DNA of 59,791 nt from Octopus bimaculoides (taxonomy: Eukaryota), in contig NC_068983.1 of NCBI RefSeq assembly GCF_001194135.2, forward strand, positions 77,655,266-77,715,056. The letters run 5' to 3'. Position 1 is the stretch's first letter; every line of letters starts with the position of its first letter. Of this stretch, positions 8,975 to 50,296 are shown piece after piece. The notes under the pieces are model-generated. The model was given only the letters and a program-made list of their open reading frames with translations, had not been told where the DNA came from and ran no database searches. The position numbers and the translations under genes are program-made.

Positions 8975-9138
8975 TACTCTAGGCACAGGGCCCGAAATTT
9001 TGGGGGAGGAGGTCAGTCGATTGGATCGAACCAAGTACGTGACTGGTACTGAATTTATCGATCCCGAAAGGATGAAAGGCAAAGTCGATCTCGGCGGAAT
9101 TTCAACTCAGCTAACTTTTCTGCAGCTCGCTGCCTTCC
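8975..9138 (-). mobile_element. tRNA-derived SINE (internally deleted)
   Basis: The reverse complement begins aaggcagcgagctgcagaaaag, then gagttgaaattccgccgagatcgactttgcctttcatcctttcgggatcgataaattcagtaccagt (B-box plus core shared with 12562 and 33565). Confidence 0.85.
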
Positions 9139-12561: not shown

Positions 12562-12780
12562 GACGGAAAGCTAGCAGAATCGTCCATATGTCGAGCAAAA
12601 TTTTTGCGGCAGTTCATCCGTCTTTACGTTCTGGATTCAAATGCCGCCAAGGCCGACCTTGTCTTCCATCCTTTCGGAGTCAATTAAATAAATACCAGTT
12701 GAACACTGGGGTCGATGTAATTGATGTAGCCCTTCCTTCAAAATTACAGGCCTTGTACCAAAACCTGAAATCATTATAGG
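12562..12780 (+). mobile_element. tRNA-derived SINE, near full length
   Basis: Head agctagcagaatcg, B-box-like ggattcaaatgcc, core cttccatcctttcggagtcaattaaataaataccagttgaacactggggtcgatgtaattga. Confidence 0.85.
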
Positions 12781-13246: not shown

Positions 13247-13550
13247 TCAATGGCGAGCAGATAGGAATTTTTGATTAAGTTGAAGAGCAGTCAGATGATG
13301 AGAGACACAGTGACCAAGTTTCGACCATTTCCATAATTCCTGTAAAGCTTCTCCAGCTTGTTTTGGATTTCCCTCAATTACAGATTTCTGAAACCCAATA
13401 TTGGCAGTCTTCAGTCGTCCAGATCGAGTGGCGTCTGTGAGGGAAAACTTCCCGGAGAGCAACCGACACAGAGGACGAATATCTCTTGCCGTTTCCCTTG
13501 CTTAACTGCCCCTTTTGAATCCATACATCATGCAGTGTATAATACATAGG
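13247..13550 (-). mobile_element. mariner (Mos1/Hsmar-like) transposase N-terminal remnant
   Basis: HCMMYGFKRGS*ARETARDI...SGKFSLTDATRSGR...IEGNPKQ matches the mariner HTH region (HCMLYEF, F.SG.FSL.D.PRSGRP). No catalytic domain is seen. Confidence 0.75.
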
Positions 13551-14869: not shown

Positions 14870-15862
14870 TTATTTTAGTGTATTTGCACAGCTTCTAATG
14901 CTGGGGGTGAACTATGGTTCAGATGTCCATTACCAGCGAACTAAGGCATCACCTGTTATTTTTCGAGCACCATCCGGAGTATTCGAGCGGTTCCAAACAG
15001 TACTGTTTTCTGCAAGTGCTCCACCCTTATTGTAGCCCCTATATGTTCCATGTACTTCTCAAGATTTTTACTCACTACTTCCAGGGATCCGAAAATTATT
15101 GGTAGTACTACCAGCTTTTTCATCGACCACAACTGCTTATACCCCCAAGCTAACCTGTCATATCTATCAACTTTTCTTTCTTCCTTATCGCACACCTTGT
15201 TGTCAGCTGGGCATGCTATATCTATGACCCATCATCGTTTGATTTTTTTTCTCAATTAACACTATGTCTGGTTTCTTATTCCCTATCTCATGGTCACACT
15301 GAATCATAAAATCGCACAGGACCTTTGCATTTTCATTGTTCATGAAGCCTTCGGGTTTATGTTCGTACCACATTTTTGTTCCGTCAAGTCCATACTTGTT
15401 GCAGAGTATCCAATGGATAATCCTTGCTATATTGTCTTGACGTCTCTTATACTCATTGTGAGCAGTGGCTGGTAATATGCCGTACGGTTTCACCATTTTA
15501 TCCACAAATTCTGCATTTATCACTTTCGATGTTTTGTCTTTTCTGTATTTTATGTAATTGGTTCTTAATGCTTGCTTCGTTTCCGGTTTTAAATCATTTT
15601 TAGTCATCCATAGCCATCTTTTTACTCTGTCTGTCTTATCTTCAATATCCGTATGCAATTGATCATGCATTCTTTTCTTTATCTGCCTGTTTTCAGTTTC
15701 ATTTATTCTCAATTCCCTGCACAGTGCTTTATCTTGGCAATCTTCCATCCTACACAAGCCTGATTTTTTTACTTCCAATAATAACGGTCCTGTGGCTTTT
15801 TGTTACATACCATGCTACGTTGTTTCCTTCTGCCTTAATGATGTGTTTGCATCCAATCAGTC
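14870..15862 (-). mobile_element. R4/Dong-clade non-LTR retrotransposon, 5'-truncated 3' fragment
   Basis: WLWMTKNDLKPET, EYKRRQDNIARIIHWILCNKYGL, KVLCDFMIQCDHEIGNKKPDIVLIEKK (RLE nuclease PD motif) and LQKTVLFGTARILRMVL. Ends next to a tta/taa tail at ~14865. Confidence 0.9.
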
Positions 15863-15945
15863 CTGGTTATGAAGTAGATAGAAGAGACGGACTATAAGTA
15901 CTTGGGAATAAATATTGGAAATGGATAAATTGATGGATAAAAAAT
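15863..15945 (+). mobile_element. R4/Dong RT fragment inverted relative to the adjacent copy
   Basis: LVMK*IEETDYKYLGI..ILEMDK is the YKYLG motif of the RT thumb region. Confidence 0.6.
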
Positions 15946-20889: not shown

Positions 20890-21540
20890 TATTTCAACCG
20901 CTTGTAACTGTTGTTCAGAAGCCATGTGTAGTAATTTACATGTTTGCTGATGAATCCAACGTTTAATTGTTGTACACATGTGAAATGATATAGTTTCAAC
21001 TTTAGACTTTTCAACACCCGTTAACATGGCTTCCTGCTTATATGAGAACGCTGTGTCAATTCACGTGTTGACTTCTTTGGACTTCGAGTAATCTTTTGGC
21101 GAATGTCCTGACAAACTTCCGACGTTCGAACTGTAGGGTCTCTGTTTTGGGATGTGTACACTGACCCCGTAGCGCGCCACTTCTTAACTAACATTTGTAT
21201 CGTTCACTTTGCCGGTAAACATTTACCTGGAAACCTGACTTCAAAAATTTCACGCGTTTGCTTAACAAAATATATCTTCACATACGCTTCTGCAATCTCC
21301 TCTCTTTCCGCTACTGAGTATGTCATTTTGCAGAGAAGGTAAGAAATGTTTATTCAACGCAATCTTACAATCCACAAATGTGGTGAAGTTGCATTGAGGA
21401 TAACATAGCAAATGGTGCACCATCTTTGTTCAGCAGTTACAACCGGTGTAAATAACACATTAGCACTTGCAAACGAAAGGTGCTTTTTCGTGTGTAAATT
21501 TACTTCTGTGCTTACACTTTGCTACGGAACACGGGCTACT
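20890..21540 (-). mobile_element. Tc1/mariner (DD41D/Visitor-rosa-like) transposon, 5' part
   Basis: From ATG at 21326: MTYSVAEREEIAEAY...FEVRFPGKCLPAK*TIQMLVKKWRATGSV...TRSPKKSTRELTQRSHISRKPC*RVLKSLKLKLYHFTCVQQL. This is the typical N-terminal HTH pair of that group. Two stops, truncated before the DDD domain. Confidence 0.75.
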
Positions 21541-22394
21541 TTTTTTGTGTGCCACCCTTTAGAATCAAGCATTTAGTTCATAAGGGATTAGTTAACTTTA
21601 AAATATTACAAATTATAACATGCAATGTAATTTCTGTAAATAGCGGATATTCAATGTCCTTCTATTAATTCACTTTACAAAATGAAATTCTTAAGTAAAT
21701 CTATATCTATCAACTTATATACATCTTTAAATACCAAGAATGAAGTATCGTTGTGGTCAATTGATCATTAGATCATACCATCTAAATATGCAAACAAGCA
21801 TATATGCATCAACTCACGATATAGTTGTATAAAATACCAAGTTACATTGGATGACATAGTCTTAGATAACTTGCCAGATATCACATACTACACGCTTGAA
21901 CAGGACTGATCACAACTGTACACGATCTGCGCAGACATTGCCGTAAAGCAGCAAGAGCGATAAAATTTCTAAAGGTAAATCTAAAGCAAATAAACCGGTG
22001 CAGTTATTGACATGAAATACGTGATAAGACACTATTCCATATAACAACTTGCACCTTTATTATGCAGAAATTGAATCTTTAAGATCGCATATTATATAAA
22101 CATGGAAAAGCTATCAGTGGTATATTGTGTTGGGTAAATGCACTTATAATGTTTGTTTCAGACTCGTTATTGAAGAAGAATTTGTGTCCTTTAATCTGGA
22201 ATCGTCTTGCGTGATCGCAGGTACGTTCATTGTATGCTGATATTCATTCGTACATACATACGTACATACAAACACACACACACACACACATATATACATA
22301 TACACATACACACACACACGCACACACACACATATATATTTATATATATATATATATTATATTATTGTGGTAACAACACTAGTAGTAACAACAA

Positions 22395-22610
22395 GGTAAA
22401 GTTACCTTCTCGAGTCATGCCGTCTCATAGATGCGGGTCTTTCAGTTTCATAGCGTATAAGTTCCCCACCTGGATGGGCCGCCAGTCCGTCTCACGATAC
22501 CTCATTTTTGCTAGCTTAGTAGATTGGAGCAATGGGAAAGGAATAGAAACTACAACCTTAGAATAATGAGTCCAATACCCTATTCAGTAAGCTACGCGCC
22601 TCCACTATAA
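22395..22610 (-). mobile_element. tRNA-derived SINE of a second family
   Basis: The reverse complement starts gtggaggcgcgtagcttactgaatagggtattggactcat (tRNA-like A-box head), followed by a body with ctccaatctactaagctagcaaaaatgag. Confidence 0.7.
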
Positions 22611-23561
22611 CAGTAACGACGACTAGAGGAGACGATACATATGATTAAATAACTGTTGTCTCAGGTGGTTATACTTAAAATTGTCAACAAGTTTGAAACC
22701 TTAATAAGAAGGAAATAATGTAAGAGCCCTTATCGATAGTTAATTCAGTATTCATGTGGGTAAAATATTGAGAAGTATGATGAGCAGATTCGAAATTGCT
22801 ACAAGGCATTTTCTAGATAAATATGTACAAATTTAATACTTTTTTGTTTCCTGGAGCTAATAAGTTTCAATCTATAATTCTTCATCTTGAAATTTCATTG
22901 CACTTAACTTATAAAATATCCCTCTAGGCTTCATTTCCCTGAAATATGAATGCAAGAAGAATAAGAGAGTAAATATTCATAACCCTTTCAGAGGTTCGTA
23001 TTGACATTTTCTGTGAAGTGACAAGTAAAAAATAATGTTGAACCTTAAGTAGAGGACAAAAATGCAAAACTTTCTGTTTTTTTCTTATAGATTTCATATA
23101 AAATTTACTAAAGCCAGCAAACATTTAGTAAAATATATATATAATTTTAACATGCCGGAAAGAAGAAATTATCTCCCACTTTCCTTTTCTGAACAACTCT
23201 CATCAATCCCTGATTATATAACGACTTATTTCACACTTCACAAAAATGATTTTGGAATTACTGAAGCAAAATTCACACCAGTCTCTTACCATTGTTTCTT
23301 CAATCACATTTCCATAAGCTTTAACACTTTTTAACAAAAACACTCTAACATGTGTTTTGCTTCTTGAAATTTACTGTTTAATTCAACATAAACTAACTCA
23401 ATTATAGGAATATGTTTTAGTAAACATTGTATGGACTGTGAAATTCCTGGAACTAAATATTCCCTAACTCTAGAAAAACAATTTCACATATAAAAGTCTA
23501 GACATATGTATCCCCTTATATACAAAGATCATACAGACACACACAACCCATGCACGCACAG

Positions 23562-23640: not shown

Positions 23641-24181
23641 TACACATTCATGCACCTGCAAAATCACATGCGCGTCAATTATCTGTTCGCAGGTCAGTTC
23701 GACCGGAACAACTCTGCAACAACTACAAGAATCTCACTAAACAGTTTGACAGTCCTTCTATCTTTAACAAATTTCAAGTACTTAAATACTTAATCTAGCA
23801 AAGAACACTCTTGAAATTTATGCTTGAAATTTACCAATAGATGTGAAATCGATATTGGTTTGGATTGGTCTTTGTAAAATGTCTTAAATAATACATTAAT
23901 CGATATGTATTTTGATATCCTACTTCAAACAGCCCCAAGGCCAGCAAAGAAATCGTAATCATTAATGTTGTCATCTTCCTCCTCACCACCACAGTCAACA
24001 CCAATACAATCGGCGCCACCAATACATTCAACCTCAAAAATTATCAGACAGCAGCACCACCACCAACATCACCATCACCAGCGGCATTGCCACCGTCCCA
24101 ACCTACATTTCTGCTAATGACACTGAACTATTGCAGATTTAATCAACGATAATTGAAACAGTATTAAATGACACACCAAAC

Positions 24182-24193
24182 GTAGTAGTAGTG

Positions 24194-24240
<47 letters not shown>

Positions 24241-24247
24241 AGCAGAA

Positions 24248-24278
<31 letters not shown>

Positions 24279-24301
24279 AAGCAGAAGCAGCGGCAGAAGC
24301 G

Positions 24302-24362
<61 letters not shown>

Positions 24363-24385
24363 CAGTAGTAGTAGTAGTAGTAGTA
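24182..24385. repeat. Compound trinucleotide repeat (GTA)n-(GCA/GAA/GCG)n-(GTA)n
   Basis: Direct reading. It explains the poly-V/A, poly-L and poly-Y/C ORFs. Confidence 0.97.
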
Positions 24386-24830
24386 AACTGGAAACATTAC
24401 TACAGACTGTGCATGGATTTACCAAAGAAATAAACATGAAATTCAACTTCGAAAAATGTGCCAAATCAAATTTCAAAAGAGGAAGTTTAGCTTAGAGTAA
24501 TTATATCACACTACATAAAGCGAATGAAATAAGAAAATTAGACCAAAGGCAGACCTACAAATACTTAGGATTCAATAAACTAAATACGGAACAACACACA
24601 CAAGTGAAAACGAAATTGAGAAAGGAAAACTATACACGAATTAGATTAGTACAAAAAATAGACTTCAATGCGATAAACAAGATAATAGGTATCAACACTC
24701 TAGTCTTCCCAGTTGTAACTTACAGCTACAATATTCTTAATTAGATTCTACATGAATTAACGAAACTAGACAGGAAAACAAGAAAAATAATGAATTTGGA
24801 CACACCACCCAAAAGCTGTCATAGAAATGG
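24386..24830 (+). mobile_element. R4/Dong-clade RT internal fragment
   Basis: KLETLLQTVHGFTKEINMKFNFEKCAK...TYKYLGF...NKIIGINTLVFPVVTYSY...LTKLDRKTRKIMN..HHPK. Confidence 0.85.
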
Positions 24831-28480: not shown

Positions 28481-29145
28481 GTATGCATGTATATGTATAT
28501 ATACATATGTATATATATAAATATATATATATGTATATATATATATACATACATATACATATACATACACACATATACATACATACATATATACATAAAT
28601 ATACCTATACATACATATACATGCATATATAATATATGTGTGTGTATACTTTATATAACATCCCTTCCATTTAAATGAAACAGCGCGAGGAACATTTCAA
28701 AGGCCATTTCGCCTTATACAGTGTGAGTTTGCAACTAAAGGCACATCTAGATTAGTTTTTGCCAGCTCAATGAAAGATGATTTGGAATCAATCAACACGT
28801 TCTTCACTGTTTCTTCTTATTCTGCTAACCCTAATCTCAACACTAATTATCTTTCTAACTCTAATCTAGACCCACGTGTGAATTTTCTTAGATTACTCTA
28901 CCAACCACGAACACATATAAAGGATTAATTTAACCATTTATTTCATTAGGAAAGCTATTAAAATATTTGAATCTACAATTTAAATTGCTTGCTGAACAGG
29001 CATGTCAACAGCTGCCCCAGTAAACTCTCTATATTGGAGAATAGATTATTGGATAATTTCAACTGTGAAAGAAACAATAATGGATTATGACAAAATAATA
29101 ATAACTCCAGATTAGGATATACATTTTGAGTTTTTCATGTGGGCT

Positions 29146-29228
29146 CCCCACTCTATGTGTGTACCCCACTCTATGTGTGTACCCCACTCTATGTGTGTAC
29201 CCCACTCTATGTGTGTACCCCACTCTAT
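29146..29228. repeat. Perfect 18-bp minisatellite (ccccactctatgtgtgta) x4.6
   Basis: Four identical units plus an 11-nt partial unit. Confidence 0.97.
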
Positions 29229-31226
29229 TGCGCTCTGCACATATAGACAAAGCAACTCATCTTTTTCTAATCCATCTTTTAACTCTGTGAAATGCACTCA
29301 AGTTATATTTTCAATCTAAATTTAACTTATTTCATATACAGGTATGTTGTTTGTATGTCGTTCTTTTTATTGTTCTGGTCTTCTTCACATTTGATTCCAA
29401 AAATTTTCCCAGTTCATGTTTGTGTAAGAGCTGTACAATGATATGATTTGAAAATTCATTTCTCAACTACTGCATAAAATCTTGGATAAAAATGTGTAAA
29501 GTTCTTACCTGAATCCTATAGAATGAGCTATTCAAGGACTAGGAAATACTAGAAGTTATTAACGGGAGGGTGCACTTAGGAGCGGGGTGAACGTGTTAAA
29601 GAAATAAGTTGTCCAGAAGCTCCATGTAATAAAATACATAATCATCAAATGTCAAAACCTTGTTAACGGAGTAACCGTAAGTAAAGTTAAACGGTTAACG
29701 TAGGTTACTGAATAAAAAATTTACTCACAAGAAATTAATACGAAGAATCTCGCCTATGGTACACAATGGAGGAAGTCTAAGTCCAGAGGTCTCTAAATTA
29801 GTCAGTAACAATTTAAAATAATTCACTAGTTAAAGCCGTTACAAAGGGTTTGTTTATAGATAAACAAGAAAATGAAATGAAGGAATAAAAGGTAAGGGAG
29901 ATAAGACAATGAGTAGGATTTAAGGACTGCATATGTCGTTCAGTCTCATAACTGTAGAACATATGAGAGGAGAACATAGAGACAAACAATTTAGTGGTTA
30001 AGGGGAGGCAACACGTCCCGATAGGCCAACAGCGCAATGAAGACTAAGGAAAAATGGCTAAATTTCGTATATAGTGAATTCTAGTAAAACTTAAGTATAT
30101 ACCGGTATGTAAGAAGAACATATTAAACAGGTGCTCTACAGGGCATAGCTAAAATGGCACTGATAGTTAGGTAGATGTTATTTAAGGACAAGTTACGTGT
30201 TAAAATAATATCAATCCTACAAAAGCGTTAAATAAATATAAAAGTAAATAATTTATGTTAATATAAAAAAAAAACAAATATAGAGACAATAACGGGTACA
30301 ATAGATGGGTACAATAAATTGGGAGACCTCCGGCCAGCTAATCCTATGAGAAAAGTAACCTTACGATAAGCATTTTACTAAGTGAGCCTCAAAAGCAAAA
30401 ATAAAAATAAAATGTGAAAGAAAATAAAATGCCGAAAGGCACGATAGAAAAATACTAATTAAATCTAATCATTAAAGTTATAAATAAAAGTATAATAACT
30501 CCTAGAGGGTATAAGGAATATTAATGGACATAGTGTACAATAAAGTAAAGGAAAGACTATAAAATAAATTATAAAATAAAATAAAATGAAACGGCAGAAG
30601 GAATCAAATATGTAGGGGGTATACTAACACAAATATACGTAGGGCTAATAATGTGGTAGAAAACCAAAGGTCACTAGTCTTCCTAGATCACTAATAATAG
30701 CGATAAAATGCAAAAGGCAAAAGGCAATGTGTTAATAAGGTGGAGGAAATGTTAACTGGTGTAAGAGATAGGTAATTCGTATCGGTGGTTGATTACATTT
30801 AAACACTTAGGAGAAGGGGAAGGGTTTGCTATTAGACACACTAGGAGAGCCTCGGTCATTCCTAAGAGTATGATAGTTGTTTGAGCTCGGATGGTAAATG
30901 GTAAAGAATTATGTGCACTTTACATGTTGGGTTTTTAGAATATTTGTCTAAACCATGCTTTCTCATCTATTTCTTCTTCCTTTTGTTTATATTGTATGCT
31001 CTTGTTTTTTACTCTGATGAAGATCGGTTGCCTTAATTCAAATGCCTTATAACGATGACAAATTTTATTCTCGCATATATGTATAGAATGTATTATGGGA
31101 ATCTGATCAGAAAGAGCTGTTAGCTCTTTTATGTCTTGATCTGTATAAAACAAGCTTTAAATGTGGTCCAATTGATGTGCTGGTTAATCTATATTTTGCT
31201 CCGTTTTCTAATTATATATATAATTA

Positions 31227-31261
<35 letters not shown>

Positions 31262-31944
31262 NNNNNNNNNNNNNNNNNNNNNNNNNNNNNNNNNNNNNNN
31301 NNNNNNNNNNNNNNNNNNNNNNNNNNNNNNNNNNNNNNNNNNNNNNNNNNNNNNNNNNNNNNNNNNNNNNNNNNNNNNNNNNNNNNNNNNNNNNNNNNNN
31401 NNNNNNNNNNNNNNNNNNNNNNNNNNNNNNNNNNNNNNNNNNNNNNNNNNNNNNNNNNNNNNNNNNNNNNNNNNNNNNNNNNNNNNNNNNNNNNNNNNNN
31501 NNNNNNNNNNNNNNNNNNNNNNNNNNNNNNNNNNNNNNNNNNNNNNNNNNNNNNNNNNTTTATTTATTTATTTATTTAGTTATTGACACTCCTTAAAAAG
31601 ACCATTTCAATACAATTGCTTTCATTGGTTTGATTGCGTAATGAGATTTGCTTCACACATATATGTATAATATGCATACATATCATCGGCAGAAGTTAGA
31701 GAGTAAGTCAAAACCTGAGAGTATCGAATATTGACACTTTTTAAACACAAATGTGTCCTTTGTCACTGTAACGTATGACTAAATAACTTCTAAAATACAA
31801 AATTTTGTCAAAATGTTAAGAGTAAGCCCTGTTGTGTGTGACACATTGTACCAGTATCGGAAGTTTCAAAGTGTTTTTAGTTAAAAAAAAAAATTAATTA
31901 AATAATCTGTATGTCAAATTGAATAGCTCGGAAATGGATAAAAA

Positions 31945-32499: not shown

Positions 32500-33404
32500 T
32501 ATAAACTTCATAAAAGAAAATGGAGAAGACAAAACATAATAGATGCTTGGTTCATCTTATTTGTATCACGATGGAAAAGTAAAAGAAATAGCTGTAAGAA
32601 TTATTATAAAAGGAACCGTATGAACAAAACAACCAAATAATAGCCAAACGATCTTACACACGTTTCAATCCGACAGTATATTTGAATCATCATTATTCTA
32701 ACTGTTATAAATGTAATAAGCCATATATTGGCTTCAGGGAAAGGTAAGTATATTTTTCCGGTCTTGAATTACATAATAACTTATTTGAGGACTAGGTTTA
32801 GAAATTTTGAAATGTAAATAACAACATATTAGGATGCGGAGTTTATGTTATTAAAAACTCTTCATCCTTTTTAACATTTCTCAATCTAATTTTTTGTGTA
32901 TTAAACAAATTCTTTGTGTATTACACATAATTATAAATATAATTATAAACATAGTTATAAATGTATTTTTCAAATTCATGTGATGTTTTAGCAACATTTC
33001 CAAGTTCAATATTAGCTAAATTTAAACGATCAATTTCTAATAACATGAATTCCGCATCCTAATAAGTTGTTACGTTTGAAAATTTCTAAACCTAGTCCTC
33101 AAATAAGTTATTTTGTAATTCAGGACCAGGAAATATACTTACTTTTCCATGAAGATAAATGGCAATATATGGTTTATTACATTTATAACAGTTAGAATGT
33201 CGATGATTCAAGCATACTGTCGGATTGAAAAATGTGTAGGAATTTTTTGGCTATTATTTGGTTGTTTTGTTCATACGGCTCCTTTTATAATAATTCTTAC
33301 ATGTATCTCTTTTACTTTGCATTACTCTTCCATTGGAATACAAATAAAACGAACCAAGCATCTATTATTTTTTTCTTCTCCATTTTCCTGTATGAAGTTT
33401 ATAA
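32500..33404. mobile_element. Foldback/MITE-like element with ~360-bp terminal inverted repeats
   Basis: 32500-32857 is the diverged reverse complement of 33034-33404 (tataaacttcata...tatgaagtttata). AT-rich ~175-bp spacer, TA-rich flanks. Confidence 0.85.
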
Positions 33405-33564: not shown

Positions 33565-33765
33565 GTGGGCAAAAAGCTTAGCGGTATTTCGTCTGACGTT
33601 ACGTTCCGAGTTCAATTCCCGCCGAGGTCAACTTTGACTCTCATCCTTTCGAGGTCGATTAAATAAGTACTAGTTACGCACTCAGGTCAACGTAATCGAC
33701 TTAATCCCTTCGTCCGTCTTTGTTTGCCCTCTCTATGTTTAGCCCCCTGTGAGCAATAAAATATT
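33565..33765 (+). mobile_element. tRNA-derived SINE (5'-truncated)
   Basis: gcttagcggtatttcgtctgacgttacgttccgagttcaattcccgccgaggtcaactttgactctcatcctttcgaggtcgattaaataagtactagttacgcactcaggtcaacgtaatcgac. Confidence 0.9.
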
Positions 33766-36700
33766 TAAAAAATAAATATAAATATATAGCGTATCTTATA
33801 TATATATATTCTTATATATATCCTTATATATACTCCTATTATATATATTAAGTATATATATTTTTTCATCGTTGTCCTTATCGATACAATTATTATTACC
33901 ATCATCTGTAGCACCACCAGTACCACTATCATCATAATCATCATTAAAACTCTCATCATCATCATCATAGTTTTAATATATTTTGTACAAGTTCTTCATC
34001 CATATATTATTTACCTCCTCTACGTTTTTGCCTCATCTTGAAATTCAACTTTCCGATGCCTTTCTTGGGTATATTCTGCTGCAGGTCATTCTTCCTGCTT
34101 TGCATTCGCTTTCTTTTCACGTAACAGCTGTTATATATTTGCTTGATATGTCAAAACTAGTTAAAATGCTTTCTTGTTGTGTCACTGCATCTTCCTTTCA
34201 ATAAATAATCTATATCCTGTAACAATTTGCAGTTCGAACAGGAGATTAGTAAGCAAATGAAAATACATATAAAAGAAAAACGACAGTATTGTTTCGTTCG
34301 TTTTGGCAATATACTCAAGAAAGCGAATTATTAAAATGCACCTACTAACAGCAAGAGAGATCTTTGCTTTAATTATCTTTTAACTAAAGTACTATAGATA
34401 GATAAAATTTAGATTTATTTTATTCTTAGCATTTTGATTACTTTATAAACGAAAGAAAGAAGCTGATCCATCAGGTTATTGTAAAAGGCAATAATTCATG
34501 TTGATTTACTAATAATATAATATGGCTTCTGAAGTATTTTAACGCACAACACTTTAACAATATAATCATGATGCTTCTTCTAACAATACTCAAGATGTTG
34601 AGTTGGAAAAAGAAGAAATTCATTAGATCTAGCATTTAAATTATTGATAACTCATTTTTGTCTGTAAGGAAACTGCGGGTTCTTTATTATTCATCAAACA
34701 TGACGTTGGTTAGATTATGGTAAATGTTATTAACTAGCATTCTGTTGTGTAAGAAATTCGGCTTTAAAATTCTCTTAACGTTTGAGGAATTTAGAAGTTG
34801 AATAGATTTTGTGATCGATTAACACAGACATTAAATGTTTAAGCAGGTTAAAATAATTGTTACTTTAAAGAGATCAGTAGCTCACATGATACAGAATATA
34901 TTTCGATGGGTGAAGACGTTGCTGATAAGACTCGAGACATCTTTACAACATAGGAACATAAGTTTAAACCCAGTTGATTGATAACATTTGACTATACTTG
35001 GAATTCTTCTTATCTGCTTGTAAAGTTTAGTTAGACAATGTATTGATTTCTTTTCACTAGAAACAACTAACTTTAATAAAAATGCAGATGATTGCACCAA
35101 CTGTCGTACATGACACGTACTAAGGAAAGTCTACTCTGGTAGAATTTGAACTTAAAAAGTTATGGTAAATAGCGTATTACATTTGGTAGGTTACACTACA
35201 CTCTCTTATGTAGTCACTGCCATCGTGTGAGTGAAAATATAATTTTTTAATAAAATGATTGGGTATTGGTAGAAAGTAGGGAGAGTTAGCAAATTTACCA
35301 GGTCACGTAATAAAAAACATTTGATGATTATTCATTTTTTCTTCCAGTGTCGTGCTGATATACCCTTGGGATCGATCTAACATGTTATTCTTCCATAATG
35401 AATGGCATTATTAAAGGTCATGTATTGGGTTTAATATATTCGATGATACCTCTCATGTGACATGAAAATAAAATGAAGTATTAACAGTATCTATATGAAG
35501 TTATTGTTTTAAGCCATGATTAATATTGTAATTTGCTAGTATTCAAATAACTAGAAAATCAATCATTTTTTATCGAATTTAGTTGGTGTACACTAAACTT
35601 CTATCAGATACATATCGTATCACATTGATCTATGCTACTTTGTGAAGAAATGTGCGAATACACTTTAGAGAAAAGTTATTATTTTGTAATTATAAACATA
35701 TATTTTCAAATTTGTACACATTAAAGGTGCCATATGTTTGCACATTAAATATGTTATAGACTATACGATCTATTCATCTACTTATTCATCATTCTTCGAA
35801 AACTATTTGTTTGGATTCATATTTTATTTCATTAGCCTTTTAGATTAGCAGTAGATAGTTTATGATGTGTACCCTAGGAAAGAGAGGTACTTGTAAAGAA
35901 AAAAATATTAATGCATTTAGCATAAAAGTATTCACACAACCGAATGTGTGAATAAGAATATTCAGACGTTCTATGATGTAAGCTACTGTTGTTTTCCTGT
36001 TTTAAATTCCTTATCACAGTACCTACTAGTATCATTTCCGATAAAACATCAAGCGTTAATTAATGTGTTGTATTTGTTCGGTCATTATTTTATAAACTAA
36101 TACCAAGTATTAATGTAAAAATCATCGGTCAAACAAAGAAATATAATTTGTATACATAAATATGCCGGCTGAATACAAGAAATTACATTCCCGCCTTAGG
36201 TCAGCAGTCACAAATTGTTAGTCTTCAAATTGCTCATGCCTTTTTTTTTTTGTCACTTTCATTACATTTGAAGTTTCATTCAAATTACATATTATAACTT
36301 TTCCATGAATATATAATATAACATATAAATGGCAGTGTATATATACATTAAATGCATTTACCAAAAATATTTAACATATGAGAGGTAGTTTTTCAATATA
36401 TTAATAATGTTTACAGTGCCATATGAATTTAGTACGTCTCCACTATAGATAAAAGAGAATTATACAACGGTTACAACAGGTATTTTCCACATGAAGATTT
36501 CATTCCAAAACTGAGAACAAAGAAAAATGTTGATTGTAGGGATAATAATTTTTTCATTTATTAGTAACTAGTAATATTTACTGAAATCAACAAAAAGTGA
36601 CTGGGGATTGTCCAACGTTTCAAACAGAGTCCTTCTGTAGGAAAACGTTGGCAAGAGTAGAAGGGAAAAAATGGAGCAGAGTTCTATAAACTTATATTAG

Positions 36701-46944: not shown

Positions 46945-47900
46945 ATGGAACAACAGATTTGCTCCGCCATTGTTGTTTTGTCGCGCGCCGGAAACACTGC
47001 CAAACGAAATTGTTAAGTTGACGAAACTTCCAAAAGCCACAGTTTATAGTGGGTATAAACAATTTAAATAGGAAAAGATTGATAGAAAAGAACACAAGAC
47101 TCGAAGTTATTCCAAGAACAATCCAAAATTTCTCGCTGGCCTCAAATGCTCCATTGAAACCAACCCATCCCCTTCCATGACAGCTCTTGCAAAGAAAAGC
47201 AATGTGCTCTTTTCCACGGTGTCCAGAGCTTTGATCAAGAACCTTGATATGACTAGCTATGTTCGGCAATGCCATCACCACTTAAGAGCCAAAGCCAAAG
47301 CAGTCAGAACCGAGCGATGCCCTAAGCTTCTGTCTTTCATGAAGCGTCAAGGTGCAGGAAAAGCTCTCGTATTTGTGGACGAGAAGAAGTTCACTGTGGA
47401 CGCTGAAGTGTATCACAGAAATTCCCGAGTGATGACATACAAACCTTCTGTTATCCCCACAATGTTTGAGATTAAAAATCATGTCTCTGTGATGGTATTT
47501 GGAGCCATGTCGAGTGATGGAAGTGTCATGGATCCACATTTCCTTGAGTCTGGCTTCAAGATCGGCAAAAAGGAGTATTTGGACATCCTGAAGACCTCCC
47601 TGTTACCTTGGATGGATTAAGTTTGGGCTTGTCAACGTGGGGCATATCAAGAGGTCTGCACAATTCCATGGGTAAAAAGCAACAATGGCCTTCCTTGCTG
47701 AGAGGGTGCCATTTTTGTGAGGGCCAACATCTGGTCCAGTAATAGCCCAGATCTCAAACTTCTCGATTACTATTTTATGGGGCATACTTCAAGCAATGAT
47801 CGATGCTTCACCACACTAGAGTGTCAACAGTTTGAAGACCTTCATCGTGTGTGCGACACGCCAAATCAAAAAGGTTGAGGTTGTGGAAGCTGCAAAAAAT
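46945..47900 (+). pseudogene. DD37D (maT-type) Tc1/mariner transposase pseudogene
   Basis: ATG at 46945 gives MEQQICSAIV..LPKATVY. Then VFVDEKKFTVD, VMVFGAMSSDG, EYLDILKTSLLPW and, after frameshifts, SAQFHG...IWSSNSPDLKLLDY with ~37 residues between the last two acidic positions. TIRs not identified. Confidence 0.88.
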
Positions 47901-48105
47901 TTCTTTCTCGTGTGGAGCAGTAATTGACCAAATGGGCAGCCATATTGAGTTATAAATGTTTTTGATGTGATAAATGATACATTAATATTATATAAGTCTA
48001 CGACCATTATTTTATTACAGTTCTATATTTAAGAGATGAGGAATTATGTACATTATTTACATTATTTGCATTTGACGGATATTTTTCCTCCTCTTGCTTG
48101 TTGTT

Positions 48106-48151
48106 AACACAGGGTTTCGGCTGATATACCCTCCAGTATTCATCAGGTGCC
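48106..48151 (-). ncRNA. Degenerate minimal type I hammerhead ribozyme in the left terminal repeat
   Basis: Minus strand: GGCAC-CUGAUGA-auaCUG-gaggguauau-CAGcc-GAAA-cccu-GUGUU. The core boxes and stem I are present, stem II is partly mispaired and the NUH site is lost. Confidence 0.65.
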
Positions 48152-48229
48152 TTGGGGAAATTTCGAACCTGTGTCCTCATTCCTAAGGTGGTATATTATT
48201 ATCACATCTAGACGTATCACATCTAGACT

Positions 48230-49816
48230 CACCATCTGGTTGGATTCAATGGGGGTATCCTTGATCAATTCTGTGAAGTGGGTGGAATTCTTTACTGTGG
48301 TGTTGAATCAGTTGGCAAGTCTTATAAGTGATGGTAGCCACAACAAAGAAAAAAAAGACCCAACTCTGAAAACAGAGAGGAAGTTGTCACAGGTCTTGAT
48401 CAAGAACAAGGATGTCTTTACACCAATCGAGTACAGACAACTGACTCAACATCACAGTAAACCACCACACATGTACGTTCTCCCTAAGGTACACAAGGAT
48501 GGTATTCCATTAAGACGTATAGTGAGCTGTACAGGTTCAGCATGTCATCCACTTAGCCGCTTTCTTGTGGATATAATCAGTCTATTAGCAGGAAAGTCGA
48601 CATCGTGCGTGAAAAATTCCACCCACTACACAGAATTGAGCGAGGATACCCTCATTGTATCGAACTAGATGGTAAGTCTAGATATGATGTCTATTCCCCG
48701 ACGTCCCAACTGGTGAAGCACTATCGGTGATACAAGAAAAAAACTAGTGACAGACACCCATCTAAAAGAACGCACTAGTACACCAATAAGATATTTGATG
48801 GAAATGCTGTGTAGACCAGTGGAGGGATTAGCTATCGGTTCACCATTATTACTGGTAATAGCCAATATATACATGGCATACTTTGAGAATTTGGCTTTGG
48901 GATCAATACCACTAAATCTAACCCTATAGCTACAATATGTTGATGACACCTTTATACTCTGGCCCCACCAGGAAGATGTCCAAGTGCTGTTAGATCATGT
49001 GAACTCAATAAAGCCATCCATACAGTTCACATGGAAAAGGAATAAAGACAATCAGCTGGCATTCCTGGACGTATTAATAACACCCACCAAGTATGAATTC
49101 AGGACATCCGTATACTGCAACCAAACCTTTATTAGACGATACCTCAGCTTCAACTCCCACCACTCATACACTGTAAAGAGAGAGATCCCTCAGTGCCTAA
49201 AACATTGTGCAAAGAATATAAGTAGCGATCATAATACACACCACGAAGAAATGATCTGTGAAGCAAAAACTACCATAAAAGTATATTATCCACTCCAATT
49301 ATGAAGAAGAGAGAGGATGAGGCCAATAAACTGTCCACAGTCTGTCTATGTGAAAGGCCTGTTCGAAAAGATATAAAATATATGCAGCCCATTTGGCATC
49401 AGGAGAGTATTCAAAAGTAATACAACATATCGCAAATATCTCCTTCGAATAAAACCATAATAGAAGAGAATATGACCAAAGACTGCGTGTACTCCATGCC
49501 AGGGAGCTGAGGTGGGTTATACAAAGGCGAAACATTCCGCATCCTCAAAATAAAGGTAGACGAACATCGCAAAGCTGTGACACGAGGAAATATTGATAAA
49601 TCGGGTATAGCTCATCATGTATGGAAAAATGGAGACCACCTCCCCCTGTGGGATGAAGTTAAAATAATAGACAGAGAGCACCACTGGAAAATACGAAATC
49701 TAAAAGAAGCAGTACATATTCTAGGGCACAACAACCTCCTAAGCAGACCGAGTGCAGATATGAGCAGCATACGGGAACCGGTATTAAGGAAGTGCAGAAA
49801 AATATTAGATTTATAA
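48230..49816 (+). pseudogene. PLE RT/GIY-YIG ORF broken by stops and frameshifts
   Basis: ORF pieces 48147-48668, 48747-48929, 48984-49304 and 49577-49816 are collinear parts of one PLE protein. It is 5'-truncated. Confidence 0.9.
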
Positions 49817-49905: not shown

Positions 49906-50296
49906 TAGTAATAATAATAATAACATCGAAAAATACCTTAGGAATGTGAACCCAGGTTCGAAATTTACTCAAGACACCTGATGAGGACAAAATATCCGTT
50001 AAATATAAATAATGTAAATAATGTACTTTATTTAAGTATTTATAATCAGTTTTATGCATCGTAAAAATTCTCTGAAGACCTTGTACATTGAATAAATAAT
50101 CTCCCGGTGTGCATCTCATAAATACAGTTGGAGAAACTATTATCAGAAAATATGGTATTCGCTAAATACAGATTGTGTGATCTTGGGGGCTCTGCGTATT
50201 AAGGAACAGTTTTGTATTAAACGCAAAATATATTCAGATGTTCCATTATATTCCTCCACCAGGCAGCATATTGTGCTCTCCCTCTCTCACGTACAC

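Follow-up and report, generated by a model that had tools for sequence, protein, structure and literature searches.

A non-coding, high-complexity block of 1389 nt (29520-30908) in the window, by which we mean the whole 59.8-kb stretch of DNA analysed, carries a direction signal that is mirrored at the expected size, and its strand skew switches at those same boundaries. The direction anomaly is confirmed as real, rare and beyond chance at the scale of the window, and the skew is a second, independent line of evidence beside it. The simplest explanation, which we put forward tentatively, is that the block may be an assembly artefact of the complement-only or reverse-only type; on present evidence, biological readings are less likely. 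The block and its flanks are as follows.

29100-29519, no strand assigned: left flank, pyrimidine-rich (purine 0.40), direction signal normal

29520-30908, no strand assigned: anomalous block, delimited by purine change points and containing the reversed-like segment 29535-30869

30909-31261, no strand assigned: right flank, pyrimidine-rich, direction signal normal

The window consists of eukaryotic DNA that is rich in repeats and microsatellites and is interrupted by ten N gaps. It contains remnants of transposable elements of the LINE, mariner-like and Penelope-like types, the last with reverse-transcriptase and GIY-YIG-like parts. The block sits within a gap-free contig, and 353 nt separate its end from the N run that begins at 31262. 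An 18-nt tandem repeat, CCCCACTCTATGTGTGTA, is present in about five copies in the left flank (approx. 29142-29230), whereas the right flank, in which the purine fraction is 0.32 between 30911 and 31020 and 0.42 up to 31200, closes with a (TA)n run directly adjoining the N gap 31262-31558.

On its plus strand the block is 63% purine (0.632; A 42.5, G 20.7, T 24.3 and C 12.4%), which is the maximum for the window (controls 0.510 +/- 0.033, range 0.388-0.590), and the magnitude of this skew is extreme in both orientations (0.632 or 0.368). The G+C content is 0.332, compared with 0.337 in the rest of the window. Composition is uniform across 60-nt bins and the edges are sharp: the maximum-likelihood purine change points, 29520 and 30908 (support intervals 29421-29542 and 30824-30931), coincide with the boundaries of the direction signal. 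The initial annotation had described a high-complexity, A/G-rich segment with no long ORF and no repeat, all of which is correct. Strand skew, which it did not use, jumps at the same boundaries.

The mirror-image dinucleotide bias that had been read from the sequence by hand is borne out, since the direction statistics are flipped over 29520-30908 (-29 bits against +25 +/- 10). Recounting 29641-30120 gave TA 52 and AT 39, CA+TG 45 and AC+GT 63, and CG 13 and GC 8, nearly identical to the hand counts (51 for TA and 62 for AC+GT). Over 29530-30930, TA/AT is 1.27 and (CA+TG)/(AC+GT) is 0.80, compared with 0.87 and 1.21 for the whole window. TA equals or exceeds AT in all 23 of the 60-nt lines from 29521 to 30900, as had been stated for further lines up to 30900, whereas this holds for 380 of 907 lines elsewhere (41.9%; binomial P 2e-9). 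The sliding-window dinucleotide ratios that had been proposed as a check were computed in 500-nt windows, and both ratios stay inverted over one sustained run only, 29501-30750. Less of the claim that three ratios run opposite to ordinary animal DNA survives: TA/AT and (CA+TG)/(AC+GT) are inverted for the block as a whole, whereas the excess of CG over GC is confined to a sub-range (30 vs 33 in the whole block). Nor are the three ratios separate facts, because the four strand-symmetric dinucleotide indices are bound by flow conservation and thus have two degrees of freedom only (our own derivation, with which the counts agree).

To quantify direction, strand-symmetric Markov models were trained on the rest of the window, and segments were scored forwards and backwards. 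The forward-minus-reversed likelihood of the block is -21, -29 and -27 bits at orders 1, 2 and 3, respectively. In the comparison with ordinary 1335-nt windows, the values are -29.6 bits at order 2, where such windows give +25.2 +/- 10.1 (minimum +6.8), and -25.3 bits at order 4, where they give +24.6 +/- 10.5; at order 2 this corresponds to a z of about -5.4. The distance from the exact mirror value is only 0.44 SD at order 2 and 0.07 SD at order 4, and it stays within 0.6 SD across orders 1-4. The cumulative direction score rises until about 29550 and falls thereafter, and the best reversed-like segment is 29535-30869 (extending to 30953 in one scoring variant, the conditional-likelihood ratio), with 29-31.5 bits. 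The runner-up reversed-like segments in the window reach 10-14 bits, and the E-value is about 1e-4 for a 60-kb search. The dinucleotide chi-square gives a similar picture: the difference between the forward and reversed fits is +28.3, compared with -28.0 +/- 12.3 (maximum -5.1) for 137 controls. Read backwards, the block has a chi-square of 37.5, at the 95th percentile and within the normal range, and read forwards it has one of 65.8, at the 98.5th percentile.

The inversion extends to longer words. When words were compared with their reversals, every significant class had the sign opposite to that in the rest of the window (6 of 6 at k=3 and 12 of 12 at k=4); for example, GTTA occurs 18 times in the block and ATTG once, and CTAG eight times and GATC once. 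The single-strand flows form a cycle (T->A +38, A->G +33, G->T +31). As for the dinucleotide rho values, GA (0.70) and TG (0.77) are depleted, whereas TA (1.20), GT (1.23) and GG (1.41) are in excess.

Rarity was assessed with 104 kb of long-read contigs from five loci that were reached via transposable-element proteins, or approx. 160 kb including the window. None of the 220 windows in the 104 kb of contigs is negative, and neither is any of the 67-208 control windows within the window itself. The largest natural reversed-like segments in the 160 kb score 8-14.4 bits and span at most 630 nt, and the block is the sole one of its kind in the approx. 160 kb examined. Two smaller segments of the window show related behaviour: a SINE-like copy (33579-33899) has a reversed-like score of 14 bits in 320 nt, and 22380-22742 has the same flows per base as the block (TA-AT +11, (CA+TG)-(AC+GT) -11), with a score at noise level.

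The strand skew adds information on the kind of strand operation that might be involved. The purine contrast between the block and its flanks is +0.208, a value reached by none of 186 controls (SD 0.049, maximum 0.148). When the block is complemented in place, the contrast changes to -0.056, which is exceeded by 27% of controls, and the purine fraction of 0.37 then lies next to flanks of 0.40 and 0.32-0.42. Plain reversal leaves the purine contrast unremedied, whereas complementing gives continuity with the flanks. Thus, because the skew is continuous after complementing, a complement-only form or a natural inversion is favoured over plain reversal. As complementing without reversing removes two anomalies that share their boundaries, it tips the balance towards an artefact.

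Such an artefact would have arisen if ordinary local non-coding DNA had entered the assembly under the wrong strand operation. Complementing the block without reversing it would amount to reversing the opposite strand without complementing it; a minus-strand piece, e.g., a gap-filling read or contig, might therefore have been pasted after 'reverse' instead of 'reverse-complement'. The true sequence of the locus would then be the complement of the printed one, and a software or handling error would be the presumed cause. The otherwise plain intergenic character of the block (no ORF, Pfam, Rfam or tRNA match, transposable-element termini or period) is consistent with this reading, and every feature of such an error that the sequence alone can reveal is present in the block. 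Several observations nonetheless count against it. The block has no contact with a gap, and the window contains no second example, no high-complexity mirror duplicate and no duplicated junction. Even the reversed block is only a fair fit, with GG still over-represented (81 observed, 54 expected) and GA still under-represented (82 observed, 108 expected; expected counts by our own arithmetic). Words free of CA, TG and TA are not mirrored, strictly filtered long k-mers score near 0, and under a loose filter the forward orientation has more 10-12-mers in common with the window than mirrored DNA would. The skew is extreme either way, although LINE fragments in the window reach 0.35-0.40. Finally, the composition is accounted for just as well by a CpA->TpA model.

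The last point deserves closer attention, as the initial annotation had offered a reversed or complement-only copy and CpA->TpA hypermutation as its two explanations. These are the two best-fitting simple models and fit equally well; no homologue was found for the block in either orientation in the window or the collections searched. With zero free parameters, the gain from reversal is 21.0, 29.1 and 26.6 bits for orders 1, 2 and 3, and CpA->TpA change on both strands at a rate of approx. 0.3, for which the forward block was scored on window DNA mutated in silico, gains 21.3, 28.3 and 30.0 bits. Because these gains are equal, composition alone cannot choose between the two. Of the 64 single-context transition models tried, CpA->TpA ranks first (28.7 bits) and is alone in approaching reversal; the next independent ones reach 14 bits. 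Attempts to separate the models by other word sets were of limited resolution. For words free of CA, TG and TA, the block scores about 0, where the forward expectation is +7.9 +/- 5.4, the mirrored one -7.9 +/- 5.4 and that of mutated controls +2.8 +/- 5.1; the power is low, and it is also low for the transition-invariant purine/pyrimidine recoding, since the ratio of mean to SD is about 0.4. Under a loose filter, the 9-13-mers shared with the window speak for the forward orientation (P 0.04-0.09 vs the mirror expectation), a signal driven by A-rich low-complexity words, and under a strict complexity filter the sharing of long k-mers is near 0, its sign depending on the filter. The excess of a deep back-off model over order 2 averages about 0 in controls, and the model is hence blind to orientation.

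Hypermutation of CpA->TpA and TpG->TpA on both strands, which would have converted about 30% of the sites in a purine-rich precursor by roughly 50 transitions, is in our judgement improbable, whether the process was RIP-like or a deamination linked to non-CpG methylation; that a cephalopod locus specifically underwent RIP-like CpA->TpA change on both strands appears distinctly improbable. Besides its in silico gain of 21-30 bits, equal to that of reversal, the model accounts for the joint depletion of CA and TG and the raised TA, and both untouchable words and strictly filtered k-mers match mutated controls (z -0.4 to -0.8, percentile 0.26-0.62). Fungal RIP indices are taken as positive when TpA/ApT is at least 0.89 and (CpA+TpG)/(ApC+GpT) at most 1.03. 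The initial annotation was right that the block passes them (1.30 and 0.76, composite +0.54), and none of 98 ordinary 1335-nt windows passes both thresholds; at 500 nt, however, 11% of ordinary windows do. Against the model, its rate must be tuned, and two dinucleotides deviate from its predictions: AT is low (127 observed vs about 145 or more expected, by our own arithmetic), where no change or a gain is predicted, and GG is high, where a loss is predicted. The block shows no G+C deficit (0.332 vs 0.337), although this is a weak test, as the fitted rate costs about 4 points only. Moreover, the jump in skew at the same boundaries is left unexplained, and the putative substitutions are read from composition. 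No such process has been described in animals, and a literature search returned RIP in fungi only.

A different biological reading, which we regard as unlikely but as a serious contender, is that the block is a genuine natural element with a composition of its own, inserted or inverted in pyrimidine-rich surroundings, e.g., the non-coding part of a decayed retroelement or foreign DNA. The flipped signal would then belong to the consensus of a family, which we likewise consider unlikely. The skew of 0.63 does match the sense strand of a LINE fragment at 15.0-15.8 kb (antisense purine 0.35-0.40), and sharp boundaries with uniform composition in each 60-nt bin are in keeping with a discrete element. 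Repeats can also carry a reversed-like signal, as in the SINE-like copy 33579-33899 (14 bits), and the flows of 22380-22742 equal those of the block per base, albeit with a score at noise level. However, the SINE signal is driven by CpG (CG 14, GC 6), whereas that of the block is not (CG 29, GC 31), and 160 kb of natural DNA tops out at 14.4 bits and 630 nt. To our knowledge, a TA excess such as that of the block (rho 1.20) is rare in any genome, which also weighs against an element with this composition. By the time an element has decayed beyond all its hallmarks, its composition should have approached that of its host. An inserted foreign element would account for both anomalies in a generic way only, with the exact mirror size and the equal and opposite skew as two coincidences.

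Such hallmarks were looked for widely. No ORF longer than 88 amino acids occurs in the 12 frames of the forward and reversed block, and long frames are equally absent under translation tables 2, 4, 5, 9 and 13. Pfam searches with six frames of each orientation gave zero matches, as did Rfam and tRNA scans of both orientations. At the block there is no target-site duplication or terminal repeat of at least 9 nt, no poly-A, and no tandem or hidden internal period (no lag is prominent in self-identity); the junction sequence is not duplicated in any of the four orientations tried. Compared by BLAST with the remainder of the window, the block gave A-rich low-complexity matches only, whether read forwards or reversed, and a mirror-repeat scan of the whole window found microsatellites and no high-complexity mirror duplicate. 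No copy in either orientation occurs in the 104 kb of contigs from loci related through their transposable elements. Outside these sequences, exact 31-mers of both orientations are absent from JGI metagenome contigs, blastn against plasmids and phages gave no match for the forward or reversed block, and an exact look-up of ten ORFs of the window found none on record. A protein search with concatenated open frames of the reversed and forward block likewise gave no match; flank ORFs used as a positive control were missed too, and this search is therefore uninformative. The transposable-element ORFs of the window match proteins at no more than 54% identity, and the five fetched loci share transposable-element homology only. 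Given this low identity and the unmatched flank ORFs, the empty searches are silent on the true orientation of the block.

Several more specific identities were rejected. For a mitochondrial insert, the universal 16S/12S primer sites were sought in all four orientations and did not occur at the mismatch levels allowed (a weak test), and there are no convincing mitochondrial tRNAs or long ORFs in mitochondrial codes. In the block, each of the six trinucleotides in the TTAGGG cycle is more frequent than its reversal; a degenerate telomere-like (TTAGGG)n tract was nonetheless dismissed, as the purine pattern shows no autocorrelation at any lag (values of about 0) and no self-identity lag is prominent. 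A satellite was dismissed on the lack of a tandem or hidden period, and a Helitron or other transposable element on its termini (no terminal repeat or target-site duplication). APOBEC-type editing (TC->TT/GA->AA) gains 7-11 bits vs 29, and both CA and TG are depleted. ADAR-type A->G change would lower TA, and all A->G context models reach at most 14 bits.

Chance is a very improbable explanation, either as a fluctuation in ordinary DNA or as a fortuitous direction signal in a natural inversion, where the inversion would account for the skew. By our own calculation, a homogeneous model of a genome of a few Gb would yield a 29-bit ratio several times by chance, and real genomes are heterogeneous; an inversion also accounts for the continuity of the skew as well as complementing does. 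It fails, however, to explain the direction signal, for which the E-value in the window is about 1e-4 and z is about -5, and which is uniform over 23 of 23 lines and coincides with the boundaries of the skew. Whatever probability remains falls to some other cause.

If the block is indeed a strand-handling artefact, the underlying complement-only bug would probably have struck the assembly at many further sites, e.g., every minus-strand fill, and gene models, repeat libraries and alignments would be silently corrupted. A forward-vs-reversed likelihood scan, as applied here, detects such blocks without reads. Were hypermutation the true cause, the block would give a first indication that animal DNA can undergo CpA-directed hypermutation, which would imply a DNA deamination with a 3'-neighbour preference so far described in fungi only. 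A natural element, in turn, would represent a family of repeats whose direction signal runs counter to that of almost all known DNA.

A literature search for reverse-not-complement errors in assemblies returned nothing relevant. Judged from the printed sequence, the block is what a strand-handling error might be expected to leave, in that it is mirrored in direction-dependent word statistics, featureless and sharp-edged, with a skew that is mended by complementing; it differs in lying inside a contig, away from a gap edge. With regard to fungal RIP, CpA->TpA change on both strands is the best mutational model for the block, and the block indices (1.30 and 0.76) pass the thresholds, as do those of 11% of ordinary 500-nt windows. 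However, the affected stretch is short (about 1.4 kb) and belongs to an animal genome, is not enriched in AT, and departs from the prediction in its AT and GG counts. Moreover, RIP targets duplicated sequence, and the block has no copy within the 59.8-kb window. The parallel with fungal RIP is therefore weak, given that G+C does not drop, that the window contains no duplicate and that the indices lack specificity over short lengths.

AID/APOBEC-like deaminases, which have been reported across metazoan lineages (PMC5889660), offer a metazoan example of a localised, context-dependent C->T/G->A process. Nonetheless, their 5'-TC context gains 7-11 bits for the block vs 29, the depletion affects both strands and is not strand-coordinated, and the block lacks retroelement hallmarks. 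Closer at hand, CpG-rich young SINE copies within the window itself (33579-33770, 8982-9108 and 12636-12759) have a negative forward-minus-reversed score with no artefact involved. In these copies, the signal comes from undecayed CpG (CG 14, GC 6) over about 200-300 nt, whereas in the block it comes from TA/AT, GT/TG and AG/GA and extends over 1.4 kb.

In the window, only the main block (29520-30908) has a stronger reversed-like score (the gain in likelihood when a segment is read backwards) than the SINE-like copy at 33.6 kb, which scores 14 bits and contains CG 14 times vs. GC 6 times; this copy demonstrates that a weak direction flip can be imitated by repeats that are young and rich in CpG. 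The repeats and transposable-element remnants discussed here are as follows.

Repeats and transposable-element remnants in the window
33579-33770, 8982-9108 and 12636-12759: CpG-rich SINE-like repeat copies (motif example GGTCGATTAAATAAGTAC)
24165-24411: long microsatellite arrays, (GTA)n / (TAG)n
24496-24741, + strand: C-terminal fragment of a LINE reverse transcriptase, following the (GTA)n / (TAG)n arrays
14933-15865, - strand: LINE fragment in which a frame stays open for 199 aa
48108-49813: Penelope-like retroelement remnant containing reverse-transcriptase frames plus, at 49511-49813, a GIY-YIG-like one
47072-47617: putative mariner/Tc1-like transposase fragment, translation read by eye
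13250-13501 and 21024-21203, both - strand: putative mariner/Tc1-like transposase fragments, translations read by eye

A further segment, 22380-22742 (363 nt), adjoins a (CA)n/(TA)n run, and its flows, i.e., differences between dinucleotide and mirror-dinucleotide counts, match those of the main block per base (TA-AT +11, (CA+TG)-(AC+GT) -11, and (GA+TC)-(AG+CT) -9). Its reversed-like score is 9-12 bits, which is at noise level, and both purine skew and a skew contrast with its own flanks are absent from this segment. The T->A->G->T cycle of the main block is also found in the (GTA)n / (TAG)n arrays. Approximately 300 nt upstream of the main block, at 29142-29230, lies an 18-nt tandem repeat, CCCCACTCTATGTGTGTA, in about five copies, and positions 32500-33403 form a large imperfect palindrome with 78% identity to its own reverse complement over approximately 950 nt.

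Among the transposable-element remnants, the LINE fragment at 14933-15865 shares 70% DNA identity with L002, and the Penelope-like remnant shares 65% with L001, both loci having been fetched via matches to the transposable-element proteins of the window. No ordinary stretch of the window is richer in pyrimidines than the antisense strand of the former (purine fraction 0.35-0.40). Near the Penelope-like remnant, inverted repeats of 50-90 nt pair 48042-48295 with 48609-48693 and 49935-50032.

Several microRNA families in Rfam, mir-297 and mir-466 among them, match 28503-28650 below threshold; these matches lie on a TA/CA microsatellite and are spurious and of low complexity. Microsatellites (TA, CA, or similar) also flank, on one side or more, at least eight of the ten N runs, which lie at 1068, 3382, 4438, 18641, 31262, 45189, 50348, 52912, 54747, and 58208 and range in length from 10 to 755 N. 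Such a gap pattern is usual for a scaffold assembly that was built from short reads and whose gap sizes are estimates.
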